This document shows, in pieces, positions 39,232-60,834 of a stretch of 64,000 nt of DNA; positions within the stretch are counted from its first letter, which is position 1; every line of letters starts with the position of its first letter. The notes under the pieces are model-generated. The model saw only the letters and a program-made list of their open reading frames with translations, searched no databases and had not been told where the DNA came from. The stretch is from Octopus sinensis (lineage: Eukaryota), in NCBI RefSeq assembly GCF_006345805.1, contig NC_043006.1:52390001-52454000 (forward strand), read 5' to 3'. The position numbers were made by a program, and so were the translations under genes.

Positions 39232-39407
39232 TTATTTTCTAATATTGCAGTTGGCTCTGTATTGCCAATCACACACTTGCTTTTCCCTGTTGAAGTGCAA
39301 GTTTCCAGGGCAATCCTTTCTGTAGGCAATATTCCAGTCACAATGATAAAAATGTCTGCAGCTTTGTGGATCAGGGAAAAGACCTGAAGCTTCAGGACAT
39401 TTGAAGC
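39232..39407 (-). CDS. Terminal exon encoding a type-2 chitin-binding domain (peritrophin-A/CBM14)
   Basis: FKCPEASGLFPDPQSCRHFYHCDWNIAYRKDCPGNLHFNREKQVCDWQYRANCNIRK*. Spacing is C-x12-C-x5-C-x9-C-x12-C-x7-C with the typical FPDP, FY.C, CP..L.F and CDW motifs. TTTTTCACTAG acceptor, phase 1. AATAAA lies downstream at about 38952-38957. Confidence 0.9.
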
Positions 39408-41251
39408 CTAGTGAAAAAATATGAACAAAATTGACTTTTATTACAAGTGTCGAATAAATGAATTTTAATTATATGTAACTGATGATTGAGTAAACATTTA
39501 TCGATGATCACATTTAATTATTTGATGAGACTGGCAACATGAGGGGTGTATGTATACATGTATGAATATGTGCATACATGTATGTATATGTATATATGTG
39601 TGTGTGTGCATGCATGATTGTGTCTCCTGGTCTTGCTACTGCATGACTGTTACACATGAGTGTCACTTTCATAGAAGCAGTGTTATTCATTTCCAGTATC
39701 CTGTAAAACCATGTCTGGCTATCAAGAAATATTTTTTTACTTGGAGACAGGTGCGGGTTGGCAGCAAAAAAGGTATTCAGCTGTTGAAAATCTGACAGAT
39801 GCAAGGTCTTATCTATCTGCCTGACCTATGCAAGCATGGAAAAGGGGATGTTAAAGCAATAATGATGAATTGCTTTAACTGCTTTTGGAAACCCAAATCA
39901 TTTCGTAAGAGAGACTGGTGCCTTTTTATCTCTTTAATTGAAACAAACAATTCTACATAACAACTCAGCTTCATTACACATGGATGAATCTTACACACAC
40001 ACACACACACACACACACACACACACACACACACACACACACAAACACACACACGCGCACACACATACACACTTACAAGTGTGTATTAATCAGAAGGTAA
40101 TGCATAATGAGTGTGTAAGTTCTATACACTAAAATAAATATAAATACCACCACCACAAAAATAAACCAAATAAAATCATCTTTGTCAACTCTCATCTCAA
40201 TTCATTTAGATTAGTGTTTCTCAAACCTTTTCCATCTACTGACACCTTTGATTCCTGTTTTTTTTTAGGTGGACCCTGGCAAACATTTGATGTTTAAAAA
40301 ATCATAATATTAGGAATTGTATAAAAAATATTGTTAAAATATTCCGTTCATTGTAGAAATATAATCGATTTATTGCTCAGAATCTTATATGAACCCTCAA
40401 TGATCATATGGACTGGTTGAGAATGACTGATGAAGATAAAGCAGGAGGAAAAGTTAAGTGATCTTAGTCAGTGACTAAAATATATTTGTACATTCACTGA
40501 ACTGACTTGGAAAATTTCAAAATGAATATATATTTTTCTTTTCTACTTTTGTGTTTTAAAGAAAAATTATTAACTTTACAATTTTTGGGAACAGTATTTT
40601 GAAAGTGAAACCTTTTTAACCAAAACAAACTAGCTCTCAGTATCAGAAAAGTTGGTCAGAATCTTATATTACTTTCATATTTACCCCCTCCCTCCACCCT
40701 ATGGTAAAATGATTACACCCAGCAAGAAGCTTTTAATCTAATCAGCAGATTTATTATGAAATTGTTAGCACTAAGCAGTGTTAAGGCATAAACAGGTTTG
40801 TGACATATGTTTGTGACATATTTCAACTGCTAAAAGGCAAATACACTGCTGTTACCGAGATGTACCTTAGAGAGGCAACTCTGAACGAACTTATAAAGCC
40901 ATAGCTTTATGTATAATCCATTCAACACGACTGATTTGCGCTAGCAGATCACCCAATCGAGGTAAATAACAAATTTTTAGCATTAGGCAGTGTTTAGGCA
41001 TAAGCAGAATTTAGGTTATTTGAAATATGTTGAAATCTATTATTAACCCTCTGCAGCTCTGTTTTATTCGTTTTGCCACTCCATACATCAACTCGAATGT
41101 ATTTACATCTTTGTTCAGTATACTTCATTATCTCATGCGTTTGAATTTTTCCTTTTGATAGATTTACCTCAGGACAACATTTTCTCAATTCTCAGGCAGG
41201 TGAAAACGGTGCTCTAAATGGTTATCGACAGGTAGTAGGTATTATTTAATT

Positions 41252-42148
41252 CTTTCACCCGCACGATTTAATTAAGAAAAAGGATAAATCTCAGATTTTC
41301 TGCATGGAATCTAGTACCCTGACCTCCTAATATCCTGCAAACTCTTTATTTTTGTTCAGGAAAAAAGGCTTGGGGAACCGGACCCCGCCTCCACCATATC
41401 ACGGAATCATTGGGAATTTTTTTTCTGTTGAATGAATTCCGGTGACCTCCTAATATGCTACAAAGCTCTTTTTGGGGTCCGGTAAACGGAATGGGGTGAG
41501 GTGGAAGCCTCGGAAATTTCACCCCCACGTACCCCACCCCCATTGATCTTTTCACCTACACGATTTTCACTAAGAAAAAAAAACTCAAACGCCTTATTTT
41601 TGTTCGGAAAAAAAAGTATGAACATTTTTTTTTTTACTTCGTTTCACACGTACATGCAAAAACGCTAACGTGTTTTTTTTTATAGATGAATTTATCGTTC
41701 GTTATCTCTCCACACACTTCACTACCACTAACTTCTATAACATCTGCATTTTCATTTATTCATTTCAAACTTCTTTGAATTTTCAATTAATGTAGTCCAC
41801 ACTCTCTCGAAAACATATTTCTGCAAAATATTATCTAAAAGTATCGGTAAAGAAAGAAATAGCAAAAAACATTTGAAAATGGGGGTGGAGGTGAAATTTC
41901 CGAGGCTTCCACTTCACCCTACCCTTTTTTCCGGACCCAAAAAAGGGTTTGTAGCATATTAGGAGGTCACCGAAATTCATTCACCGAAAAAATTCCAATG
42001 ATTCCGGGATATGGAGGGGAGAGTCCCGTTCCCCACCTTTTTTTCCGAACAAAAATAAGGAGTTTTCAGCATGTTAGGTCAGGATACTTGATTACACGCA
42101 AAACAACCCGAGTTTATTTTTTCTTAGTGAAAATCGTGCGGGTGAAAG
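41252..42148. mobile_element. Foldback/MITE-like element with long inverted arms in copy B intron
   Basis: About 41320-41540 is the reverse complement of about 41880-42090. TTTCACCCGCACGATTTT is found at both ends in inverted orientation. Confidence 0.75.
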
Positions 42149-59390: not shown

Positions 59391-60777
59391 TGCAGGCTGA
59401 GCTCTCTATCAATTTGGGCTCTGCACTCAAGACTGTAAAATAGTGGCTTTAAGAAGGGCATCCAGCCACAAAACCCATGCCAAAGCAGACGGGTGCCAGA
59501 CGTAGCCCTGGCTTGTTGGCCCCTGTTATATATATATGTGAGTGTGTGTGTGTGTGTGTGTGTGTGTGTGTGTGTGTGTGGTAACATTCCGAAATATGGA
59601 TAATTTGTTATGAAACTTTTCTACATATACGTCTCAGATGGTGTAGATTACGGTTATATAGGAATTTGTCGTGTAAAGCATTTCTCTCTCTTTTAAATAA
59701 ACTCAAAGGTCACCGGTCCTTAACGTTGTTGTTTAGTATACTAGAAATAGCAGTTATATATATATATATATATATATATATATATATATATATATATATA
59801 TATATATATATATATATATATATATATATATATATATACGTATATATATATTCTTGACTGAGGTTAGCTTATTCTCTGAATAATCGGTCCAATCGGCTTA
59901 AGGCCAGTTTGGGAACAAATATACCATATATATCACTACATTCATCCTATCTGAATTCTAGGAAGGATTAAACACTAACATTATTAATTAAATACCAAAA
60001 AAGAAAATGTCTTATGTACAAAAACAGTATCGGGAAATTAATTCTATAAGCAAACCTATAACTATCTCTTAAATTATCTCTTAACTAAATAGCAAATTAT
60101 ACCTTGAAGTCCATACAGATAATATCCCCACCAGTCTTCCATAGTTATTTATCCAAACACGAAAGCTTTTATATTCTATATATTCTAATCTTTCCATTAT
60201 ATATATATTCCAATATATATATATATATATATATATATATATATATATATATATATATATATATATATATATATATATATATATATATATATATATATAT
60301 ATATATATGTATATATATATATATATATATACATACATATGTATGTATATGTATGATGTATATATATATCAAGGACGGGTCATTCGAAGCTTTCTAGCCT
60401 CAGTCAAGAACTGGATCATCGTCGCAATTTCGGCTGAGTGGATATGTATGTGTATATATATAAATATATATAAACATATATATATATATATATAGTGTAT
60501 ATATATATATATATATATATATATATATATATATATATATATATATATATATATATATATATATATATGCATACACATGCTTGCAAGCACATACAAACAT
60601 ACATAGATACACCCCCGCACATATGTATATGTATATATAAAGACACATATATGTCTAAAAAAATTATACAGAATCTCTGTGGAGTGGTGTGGTGTGACGT
60701 TTGTGTGTGTGTGGTGTGTGCGTGCGTGCGTGCGTGTGGGTGTTCGGTTTGTAAAGAATCCAAGACAGAATACTTAC

Positions 60778-60834
60778 AGAAGTTATTGTAGCAAGAAAAG
60801 CGCAGAGCAGGAATCTACCGGCTGATTGAATCAT
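60778..60834 (-). CDS. Copy B exon 1, signal peptide [19 protein letters not shown]
   Basis: ATG followed by a hydrophobic core and a TCT|GTAAGT donor in phase 0. It continues into PIVA-DYVIDVK of exon 2. Conserved in copy A. Confidence 0.88.

Follow-up and report, generated by a model that had tools for sequence, protein, structure and literature searches.

A predicted secreted octopus protein family that joins a Notch-ligand-like C2-DSL head to a chitin-binding tail

Does an octopus gene that begins like a Notch ligand end in a chitin-binding domain instead of a membrane anchor and, if so, what might its product do? This question is raised by a stretch of 64,000 nucleotides of the Octopus sinensis genome (RefSeq assembly GCF_006345805.1, contig NC_043006.1, positions 52,390,001 to 52,454,000 of the forward strand; hereafter referred to as the window), which is identical to part of chromosome CM016868.1 (assembly GCA_006345805.1). 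A preliminary description of the window, made from its letters, had joined ten minus-strand exons between positions 60834 and 39232 into a gene (hereafter gene A) for a protein with a signal peptide (SP), an MNNL/C2 domain, a DSL domain, 13 EGF repeats and a terminal ChtBD2 domain (CBM_14 in Pfam), and had suggested that the protein might be tethered to a chitinous matrix and present its DSL head from there, as an agonist, a decoy or a chitin-sensing adhesion molecule. We analysed the structure of this gene, its relatives and its head.

Structure of gene A and the place of its chitin-binding exon

The ten exons of gene A (Table 1), running on the minus strand from 60834 to 39232, are flanked by AG acceptors and GT donors and join, all in frame, into a reading frame of 2292 nt. 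Exons 6–9 are of phase 1-1, as had been described, and exon 10, which encodes ChtBD2, is entered in phase 1 and closes with TAA, so that the frame stops five residues past the last ChtBD2 cysteine. When the acceptor of exon 8 is placed at 44455 and the micro-exon is included, the 763-aa product is the same in every letter as XP_029641279.2 of Octopus sinensis. This identity, together with the splice sites, the phases and the Pfam matches, confirms the order SP-MNNL/C2-DSL-EGFx13-ChtBD2-stop, and it also bears out the cephalopod origin that had been assumed. The 760-aa model of the preliminary description has the right architecture and differs from the 763-aa product solely in the acceptor of exon 8, for which it used the AG at 44446, a difference of 9 nt. 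That version has no entry in the protein collection searched. Acceptor 44455 gives ..CENVLSACLS.., and it is the better choice because the paralogs and orthologs have V(L/I)S at this place (..CE(N/T)V(L/I)SACLS..). As for the poly(A) site that had been proposed near 38930, candidate AATAAA signals are present on both sides of this position as pattern matches (Table 1).

We ran Pfam on segments of the product, using the curated cut-offs of 22.5 bits for MNNL, 24.2 bits for DSL and 22.1 bits for CBM_14. MNNL (33.1 bits), DSL (42.3 bits) and CBM_14 (50.5 bits) all exceeded them, as did EGF, and the CBM_14 match spanned positions 1–53 of the 53 positions of the profile. The tail is a genuine CBM_14/ChtBD2 domain by this measure, as had been claimed. 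In sequence it also matched the CBM14 domains of chitinases (one of them in phmmer with E = 2.4e-12), tachycitin, squid chitin-binding beak protein 3 and the CBM14 of chitotriosidase, and its best match among solved structures was the CBM14 domain of 'immunomodulatory active chitinase'. None of the copies has lost any of the six ChtBD2 cysteines or the aromatic core. At the N-terminus, which is conserved across all paralogs, the n-, h- and c-regions typical of a signal peptide can be made out by eye. Past residue 30 we found no membrane anchor: the highest Kyte-Doolittle mean over 19 residues was 0.61, compared with 2.97 in a membrane-bound Haliotis DSL protein.

The outcome of domain searches depended on how the protein was presented. 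An hmmscan of the whole 763-aa product reported EGF-type families and DSL only, missing both CBM_14 and MNNL, which were detected only when the ends of the protein were scanned alone; the same was true of the abalone protein described below. The precomputed domain lists for the long isoforms are likewise without PF01607. It follows that domain-architecture look-ups may not list this combination of domains, and missed domains in cysteine-rich proteins plausibly explain why the architecture went unremarked and why the records bear misleading names. RefSeq labels XP_029641279.2 'neurogenic locus notch homolog protein 1-like isoform X1', UniProt (A0A6P7SSQ8) calls it 'Delta-like protein', and 'Notch homolog', 'fibropellin' and 'jagged-1b-like' occur as misleading names across the family. 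On the practical side, CBM_14 and MNNL in these cysteine-rich proteins escape standard whole-protein HMMER scans.

In assigning the ChtBD2 exon to gene A, the reading frame is of little help. EGF and ChtBD2 modules are both of phase 1-1, and frame compatibility is weak evidence for this reason. We compared gene A with its neighbours in an 86.8-kb locus that reaches past the window at both sides and is identical to the window where the two overlap. This locus contains three ChtBD2 exons and two signal-peptide exons, which strictly alternate. In order, these are the ChtBD2 exon of an upstream paralog and, 9.7 kb on, the signal-peptide exon of gene A, whose last EGF exon is separated by 3.8 kb from its ChtBD2 exon. 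At 25.8 kb from the latter, the signal-peptide exon of the next tandem paralog, gene B, starts at 13406; the last EGF exon of gene B follows and, after another 2.6 kb, its ChtBD2 exon. The first five exons of gene B lie within the window, the remaining ones, including the EGF exon, the micro-exon and the ChtBD2 exon, past its low end. The intron sequence leading from the EGF exon to the ChtBD2 exon is homologous over its full length between genes A and B, with 80–90% identity. In both copies it harbours a micro-exon with AG/GT flanks, which has 15 nt in gene A and 18 nt in gene B, and the frame is thus kept despite the indel.

The same tail is found in the gene models of other octopuses (XP_052826418.1 and XP_014781344.1 of O. 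bimaculoides and CAI9727913.1 of O. vulgaris). At the micro-exon, O. bimaculoides reads EVPDQQGS, or, over a longer stretch, ..YCEVPDQQGSFKCPE... Outside the octopuses, the abalone Haliotis rubra has a protein, XP_046553135.1, in which a DSL domain is combined with some 20 EGF repeats and, at the C-terminus, CBM_14 (48.6 bits). Over the last EGF repeat, the linker and ChtBD2, this protein is collinear with gene A and shares 42% identical residues with it, and its ChtBD2 is encoded by a terminal exon of its own that is entered in phase 1. In gene A, the interval from exon 8 to the ChtBD2 exon contained no coding exon homologous to the family and no apparent signal-peptide start exon. The intergenic stretch from the ChtBD2 exon to gene B (39.2–13.4 kb) had no homology to the DSL-EGF-ChtBD2 family. 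These results, taken together, indicate from comparative gene structure that the ChtBD2 exon is part of gene A, and they uphold the earlier statement that neither a transmembrane (TM) exon nor a start exon intervenes. A search for spliced transcript contigs with the last two EGF repeats and ChtBD2 brought up one candidate and gave no match.

Two candidates in the intron between exon 8 and the ChtBD2 exon were considered and rejected. The only hydrophobic stretch there, apart from microsatellites and dinucleotide repeats, is FIWFIFVVVVFIFILVY at 40195-40073. We dismissed it as a membrane-anchor exon: it is a chance product of a (GTG)n run of variable length, is preceded by a stop at a distance of eight codons, has no better acceptor than a poor, purine-rich one, and is used by no prediction. 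The open reading frame (ORF) at 42426-42265, which enters the micro-exon, was rejected as a separate start, being without signal-peptide character.

Table 1. Coordinates of gene A, its candidate poly(A) signals and the part of gene B that lies in the window
Feature	Position	Strand	Description
Exon 1, gene A	60778..60834	-	ATG and signal peptide; same as N-terminus of XP_029641279.2
Exon 2, gene A	55688..55877	-	MNNL/C2-like domain, first part; Pfam MNNL 33.1 bits, residues 27-106
Exon 3, gene A	52033..52115	-	MNNL/C2-like domain, continuation
Exon 4, gene A	49075..49242	-	End of C2-like domain; fold-search support for residues 20-214
Exon 5, gene A	47668..47812	-	DSL domain with divergent loop RCDIPISEQTRFQC; Pfam DSL 42.3 bits and alignments
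Exon 6, gene A	46877..46987	-	EGF1, phase 1-1
Exon 7, gene A	46066..46185	-	EGF2, phase 1-1
Exon 8, gene A	43229..44455	-	EGF3-EGF13 in a single 1227-nt exon; RefSeq acceptor 44455
Exon 9, gene A	42318..42332	-	15-nt micro-exon, VPDQG, phase 1-1; present in XP_029641279.2
Exon 10, gene A	39232..39407	-	ChtBD2/CBM_14 and TAA; 3' terminal exon; Pfam CBM_14 50.5 bits
Candidate poly(A) signals AATAAA	38957-38952, 38897-38892	-	Pattern match only
Further AATAAA	39236-39231	-	Overlaps stop codon of gene A; pattern match only
Gene B, next tandem paralog	798..13406	-	Exons 1-5: 13406-13350, 6722-6533, 3788-3706, 1756-1589, 942-798

The C2-DSL head and the possible functions of the protein

By its sequence, the head of gene A is clearly homologous to the C2-DSL head of Delta and Jagged, as indicated by the Pfam matches to MNNL and DSL and by alignment to the structures of DLL1, Jagged-1 and DLL4. 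In a fold search with a model of residues 20–214, ranks 1–22 were all C2-DSL heads of Notch ligands, with a probability of 1.00, although the model itself was of low confidence (pLDDT 65) and gave TM-scores of 0.23–0.31, which are low because the model is poor. The nearest solved structures were the C2-DSL heads of DLL4, Jagged-1/2, DLL1, fly Delta and Serrate. When the DSL domain was aligned with those of DLL1 and the octopus proteins Delta1, Delta2 and Jagged, all cysteine columns and a YY pair proved invariant.

The loop between the third and the fourth cysteine of the DSL domain is of a different kind. It reads C(D/E)xPxxEQxRFxC in gene A and its paralogs, as against CR(P/V)R(D/N)Dx(F/L)GHxxC in human DLL1 and octopus Delta1, Delta2 and Jagged (octopus sequences from the supplement of PMC8166818). 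The abalone loop has a 4-residue deletion, and the loop is unconserved between octopus and abalone. The receptor-binding face of Jagged-1 reportedly comprises F199, R201, R203, D205 and F207, a list said to go back to Cordle et al. 2008, and all five of these positions differ between RCDIPISEQTRFQC of gene A and FCRPRDDAFGHFTC of DLL1. The Jagged-1 mutation F207A lowers Notch-1 binding to background (PMC3888931). A pattern of the CRxRDDxFGH type was present in 12 of 22 proteins with canonical names and in 0 of 10 family members. Similarly, the DOS consensus (PMC2504490) was found in 10 of 22 canonical-named ligands and in 0 of 10 family members, a comparison that we take as supporting evidence only, the regular expression being strict and missing many true ligands. 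Neither EGF_DL_JAG nor JAG1-like_EGF2 of Pfam matched the segments of gene A, in which ordinary EGF repeats come straight after the DSL domain.

Genes A and B are 83–98% identical in their exons and, similarly, 80–90% in their introns. The ratio of non-synonymous to synonymous substitution rates (dN/dS) between them was 0.63 over exons 1–7, with all cysteines kept, and 1.5 over the ChtBD2 exon, the latter value being derived from about 12 changes (1.5 synonymous and 10.5 non-synonymous). Among the paralogs and across the three octopus species, the predicted products are between 429 and 842 residues long; EGF number accounts for much of this spread, and the shortest products are RefSeq isoforms of doubtful reality. 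By these sequence comparisons, gene A has lost the marks of a working Notch ligand, and its function as such a ligand is doubtful.

We favour, with moderate confidence, the interpretation that gene A encodes a secreted extracellular linker or matrix protein anchored to chitinous matrix, and not a canonical, endocytosis-driven activator of Notch. The family would be derived from a ligand of the Delta/Jagged type, of which it would have kept the C2 (MNNL)-DSL head and the EGF rod, with a phase-1 terminal CBM14/ChtBD2 exon standing in for the transmembrane and cytoplasmic part. After secretion, the CBM14 tail may fix the protein to chitin, and the 13 EGF repeats may act as a stiff spacer between its two ends. 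The candidate chitinous matrices in an octopus are the lining of the suckers, the beak, the radula, the gut cuticle and the stylets. The C2-DSL head, for its part, would touch the secreting or a neighbouring epithelium, where its partner would be a membrane lipid (bound by C2, as it is in Jagged-1), an EGF-repeat protein or both. Calcium-dependent phospholipid binding has been reported for the C2 domains of Jagged-1, DLL1 and Serrate (PMC3888931).

Several points weigh against the matrix-linker interpretation. The predicted binding of the tail to chitin is drawn from its family membership only. The EGF repeats of gene A retain consensus sites for O-glucose (five) and O-fucose (six), as in Notch-pathway proteins. 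C. elegans DSL ligands without DOS still signal (PMC2504490), so that the absence of the DSL-loop and DOS motifs is no proof that the protein fails to bind Notch. A dN/dS of about 0.6 between recent tandem copies may be distorted by gene conversion and is derived from few sites, and the low confidence of the structure model is a further reservation. The exon junctions are taken from the gene predictions of NCBI and of the O. vulgaris depositors and from comparative structure.

The kept glycosylation sites would suit a protein that still acts on Notch. In a matrix-tethered agonist, the chitin anchor would replace ligand endocytosis as the source of resistance, and a cell pulling against the cuticle would activate its Notch receptors; immobilised ligand ectodomains can activate Notch. 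The homology of the C2-DSL head to Notch-ligand heads, the presence of a chitin-binding tail where a membrane anchor is absent and the consensus sites for O-fucose and O-glucose are in line with this idea, as are the DOS-less DSL ligands of C. elegans and the soluble Notch ligands discussed in PMC2504490. What makes it unlikely, and leaves it a minority reading, is that the receptor-binding DSL loop is replaced while octopus Delta1, Delta2 and Jagged keep theirs, that the loop differs between octopus and abalone by the 4-residue deletion, that no DOS motif is present, and that tandem copies with a varying predicted number of EGF repeats and a dN/dS of about 0.6 are unlike core developmental ligands. 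Thus, of the earlier suggestion that a DSL head is presented from the matrix as a Notch ligand, the homology of the head has held, whereas the receptor-binding loop, the DOS motif and the fast divergence speak against the rest. We consider it decidedly unlikely that the head continues to bind octopus Notch, possibly by an altered interface, with the chitin anchor giving resistance so that epithelia which secrete or touch a chitinous cuticle read mechanical load or the integrity of the cuticle through Notch. If it did, the family would offer a naturally evolved matrix-anchored Notch ligand and a natural test of the pulling-force model, in which a matrix anchor takes the place of endocytosis. 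The same homology of the head could also fit an antagonist or modulator of Notch, a secreted head that competes with membrane ligands or acts on them and whose range is limited by the chitin tail; a shortened, mollusc-specific Delta2 has been discussed as a possible negative regulator (PMC8166818). The loss of the receptor-binding motifs counts here as well, however, as a decoy must also bind the receptor, and we hold this possibility to be doubtful.

Tandem expansion, differing numbers of EGF repeats and a high dN/dS (1.5 in ChtBD2, from very few sites) resemble what is seen in recognition proteins, and the best solved-structure match of the tail belongs to an 'immunomodulatory active chitinase'. 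These features would be in keeping with a chitin-recognising factor of defence or feeding, whose tail binds the foreign chitin of fungi, parasites or crustacean prey and whose head and EGF rod form a bridge to host cells or secreted proteins. The database has a single, collinear counterpart in abalone, however, and the ChtBD2 ratio comes from 1.5 synonymous and 10.5 non-synonymous changes, and we give this explanation little credence. Yet another account would do without a composite protein altogether: the ChtBD2 exon might be a separate gene or an unused relic, with the true transcript ending elsewhere. The shared phase 1-1 of the EGF and ChtBD2 modules, by which a fit in frame proves little, is compatible with such an artefact of annotation, and predictions within the array are messy: RefSeq isoforms X7–X9 join exons 1–7 of gene A to the EGF exon of gene B, and among the O. 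vulgaris models one has its ChtBD2 exon out of frame and another has an intron-retention stop after exon 7. This account is nevertheless very improbable in view of the threefold occurrence of the unit in the locus, the micro-exon that is in frame in both genes A and B, the collinear abalone protein with its phase-1 terminal exon, the lack of an apparent signal-peptide start or homologous coding exon between exon 8 and ChtBD2, and a ChtBD2 that in all copies has retained its aromatic core and all six cysteines.

On the matrix-linker interpretation, domain shuffling would have made a secreted protein, predicted to bind chitin, out of the scaffold of a membrane-bound Notch ligand. If the head does not bind Notch, the C2-DSL module would have been reused outside Notch signalling, possibly in tying cells to cuticle.

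Relatives of the family and earlier records

We searched 1.84 billion representative proteins exhaustively with HMMER, using a C2-DSL profile built from octopus and abalone, and obtained 943 proteins at E <= 0.001. Six of them reached E <= 1e-30, all being octopus proteins or the abalone protein, and the next matches were cnidarian multi-DSL proteins and unnamed metagenome proteins. A word-indexed profile search with the C2-DSL alignment found two octopus proteins only. In the 120 next-best DSL proteins, a Pfam scan, which can miss the domain in EGF-rich proteins, detected CBM_14 in none (0 of 120). With a profile of the family's ChtBD2 and all HMMER filters off, the tail was found only in the octopus family, in the abalone protein and in one unrelated metatranscriptome protein that has no DSL domain. 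For the abalone, the searched database contains one collinear counterpart only. We do not conclude from these searches that the family is absent from squid, cuttlefish, Nautilus and bivalves, whose proteomes may not be covered by the library. Gene A is not a single oddity: on these sequence grounds it belongs to a family that is arranged in tandem in octopus, has an abalone counterpart and has so far been seen in molluscs only. The form arose either before the cephalopod-gastropod split or twice, and it multiplied in tandem in octopus.

A protein that combines EGF repeats with a similar tail was found among the Logan contigs. The intron-free 3.35-kb contig ERR1719383_251472 encodes, at 215-3130, a 971-aa protein with many EGF repeats, a tail ..GTYCEVPKMSTFTC.. 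and, after it, a ChtBD2-like domain; it has no DSL domain, and its N-terminus is of another kind. The EGF-linker-ChtBD2 tail may have existed as a module before it was joined to a C2-DSL head.

Parts of the family have been recorded before. A study of 138 lophotrochozoan DSL genes published in 2021 (PMC8166818) placed gene A and its paralogs in the class 'DSL and EGF', and its Supplementary Data 2 lists the DSL domain of gene A (XP_029641279.1-2, under the older label O. vulgaris) with those of five paralogous entries; 'chitin' has 0 occurrences in its text and supplements. In the papers that we could search, including PMC8166818, the chitin-binding tail is mentioned nowhere, and we found no paper on a DSL or Delta-like head with such a tail. 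An abalone shell proteome paper contains no EGF, Notch or Delta entries, and Notch, Delta and DSL are likewise missing from the entries of an argonaut eggcase paper. The egg-tether protein of octopus, octovafibrin, came into consideration and was set aside as a different EGF protein outside this family. As far as we found, the architecture is present in databases as a prediction and apparently undescribed in the literature. The impression of the preliminary description that it had not been described thus holds for the chitin tail and has to be qualified for the rest, as the protein is in RefSeq and UniProt and its DSL domain is in PMC8166818.

Gene A shares with the canonical DSL ligands (Delta, Serrate/Jagged, DLL1/4 and LAG-2) a putative signal peptide, a C2/MNNL domain, a six-cysteine DSL domain and EGF repeats. 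It is unlike them in having no transmembrane or cytoplasmic part, a replacement of CRPRDDxFGH, no DOS-type EGF1-2 and a CBM14 tail, and in being a member of a tandem array and diverging fast from its neighbour. LAG-2 is an accepted ligand without DOS, and DSL-1 of C. elegans is secreted. The DOS-less DSL proteins of C. elegans, such as DSL-1 (OSM-11 being a separate DOS protein), resemble gene A in their lack of DOS and, in some cases, of an anchor (PMC2504490). They are, on the other hand, short proteins that lack a chitin-binding domain, and genetics has shown that they act in LIN-12 signalling. The Delta2 described for molluscs (O. bimaculoides XP_014771450.1; PMC8166818) is a different gene from gene A and keeps CRVRDDELGH.

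On the side of the tail, the CBM14/ChtBD2 matrix proteins (peritrophins, Obstructor-type proteins, Pif/BMSP and squid beak proteins) are secreted, as is predicted for the product of gene A, and, like it, have a six-cysteine CBM14. The known ones pair ChtBD2 with more ChtBD2, VWA, laminin G or catalytic domains, and we found none with a C2-DSL head in databases or papers. Fibropellins and Notch receptors, after which RefSeq has named the O. bimaculoides and Haliotis members and the gene A product, respectively, resemble gene A in their many EGF repeats, and Notch receptors have LNR and ankyrin repeats in addition. In fibropellins, the EGF repeats are flanked by a C1s/CUB-like N-terminus and an avidin-like C-terminus (PMC10336842). 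Pfam detected neither CUB nor avidin domains in the gene A product, and whole-protein Pfam and hydropathy revealed no LNR, ankyrin repeats or transmembrane segment. The names fibropellin and Notch are by-products of EGF similarity.

Annotation and surroundings of the locus

The database records of the array have further peculiarities. Version.1 of XP_029641279 carried two DSL domains. In RefSeq isoforms X7–X9, exons 1–7 of gene A (to 46066) are joined to the EGF exon of gene B, which lies past the low end of the window at about 73337 of the 86.8-kb locus, with omission of exons 8–10 of gene A and exons 1–7 of gene B; these chimeras represent either read-through splicing between the paralogs or reads mis-assigned between near-identical copies. 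The annotation of the O. vulgaris array is inconsistent as well, with a wrong-frame ChtBD2, an intron-retention stop after exon 7 and a stop at the end of the large EGF exon.

A kinesin gene (979 aa; Pfam Kinesin, FHA and KIF1B) is annotated on the plus strand across the locus, at 1900-86846 of the 86.8 kb, and the tandem DSL-EGF-ChtBD2 array appears to lie inside an intron of this KIF1-type gene. Frames of non-LTR retrotransposons, encoding endonuclease and reverse transcriptase, are present on the plus strand at 26213-29155, 31555-34834 and 58620-59388. Much of the GC-richer intergenic stretch that separates genes A and B consists of such elements, and an endonuclease fragment is found in intron 1 of gene A. 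Three to four consecutive plus-strand ORFs of 140–300 aa at 17207-19775 have no Pfam match and are possibly another repeat element. Long microsatellites of the types (CA)n, (TA)n and (ATA)n are frequent in the introns (for instance at 36100-36180, 40000-40090, 49270-49450, 51270-51570 and 60100-60650), and most of the long spurious ORFs are due to them.

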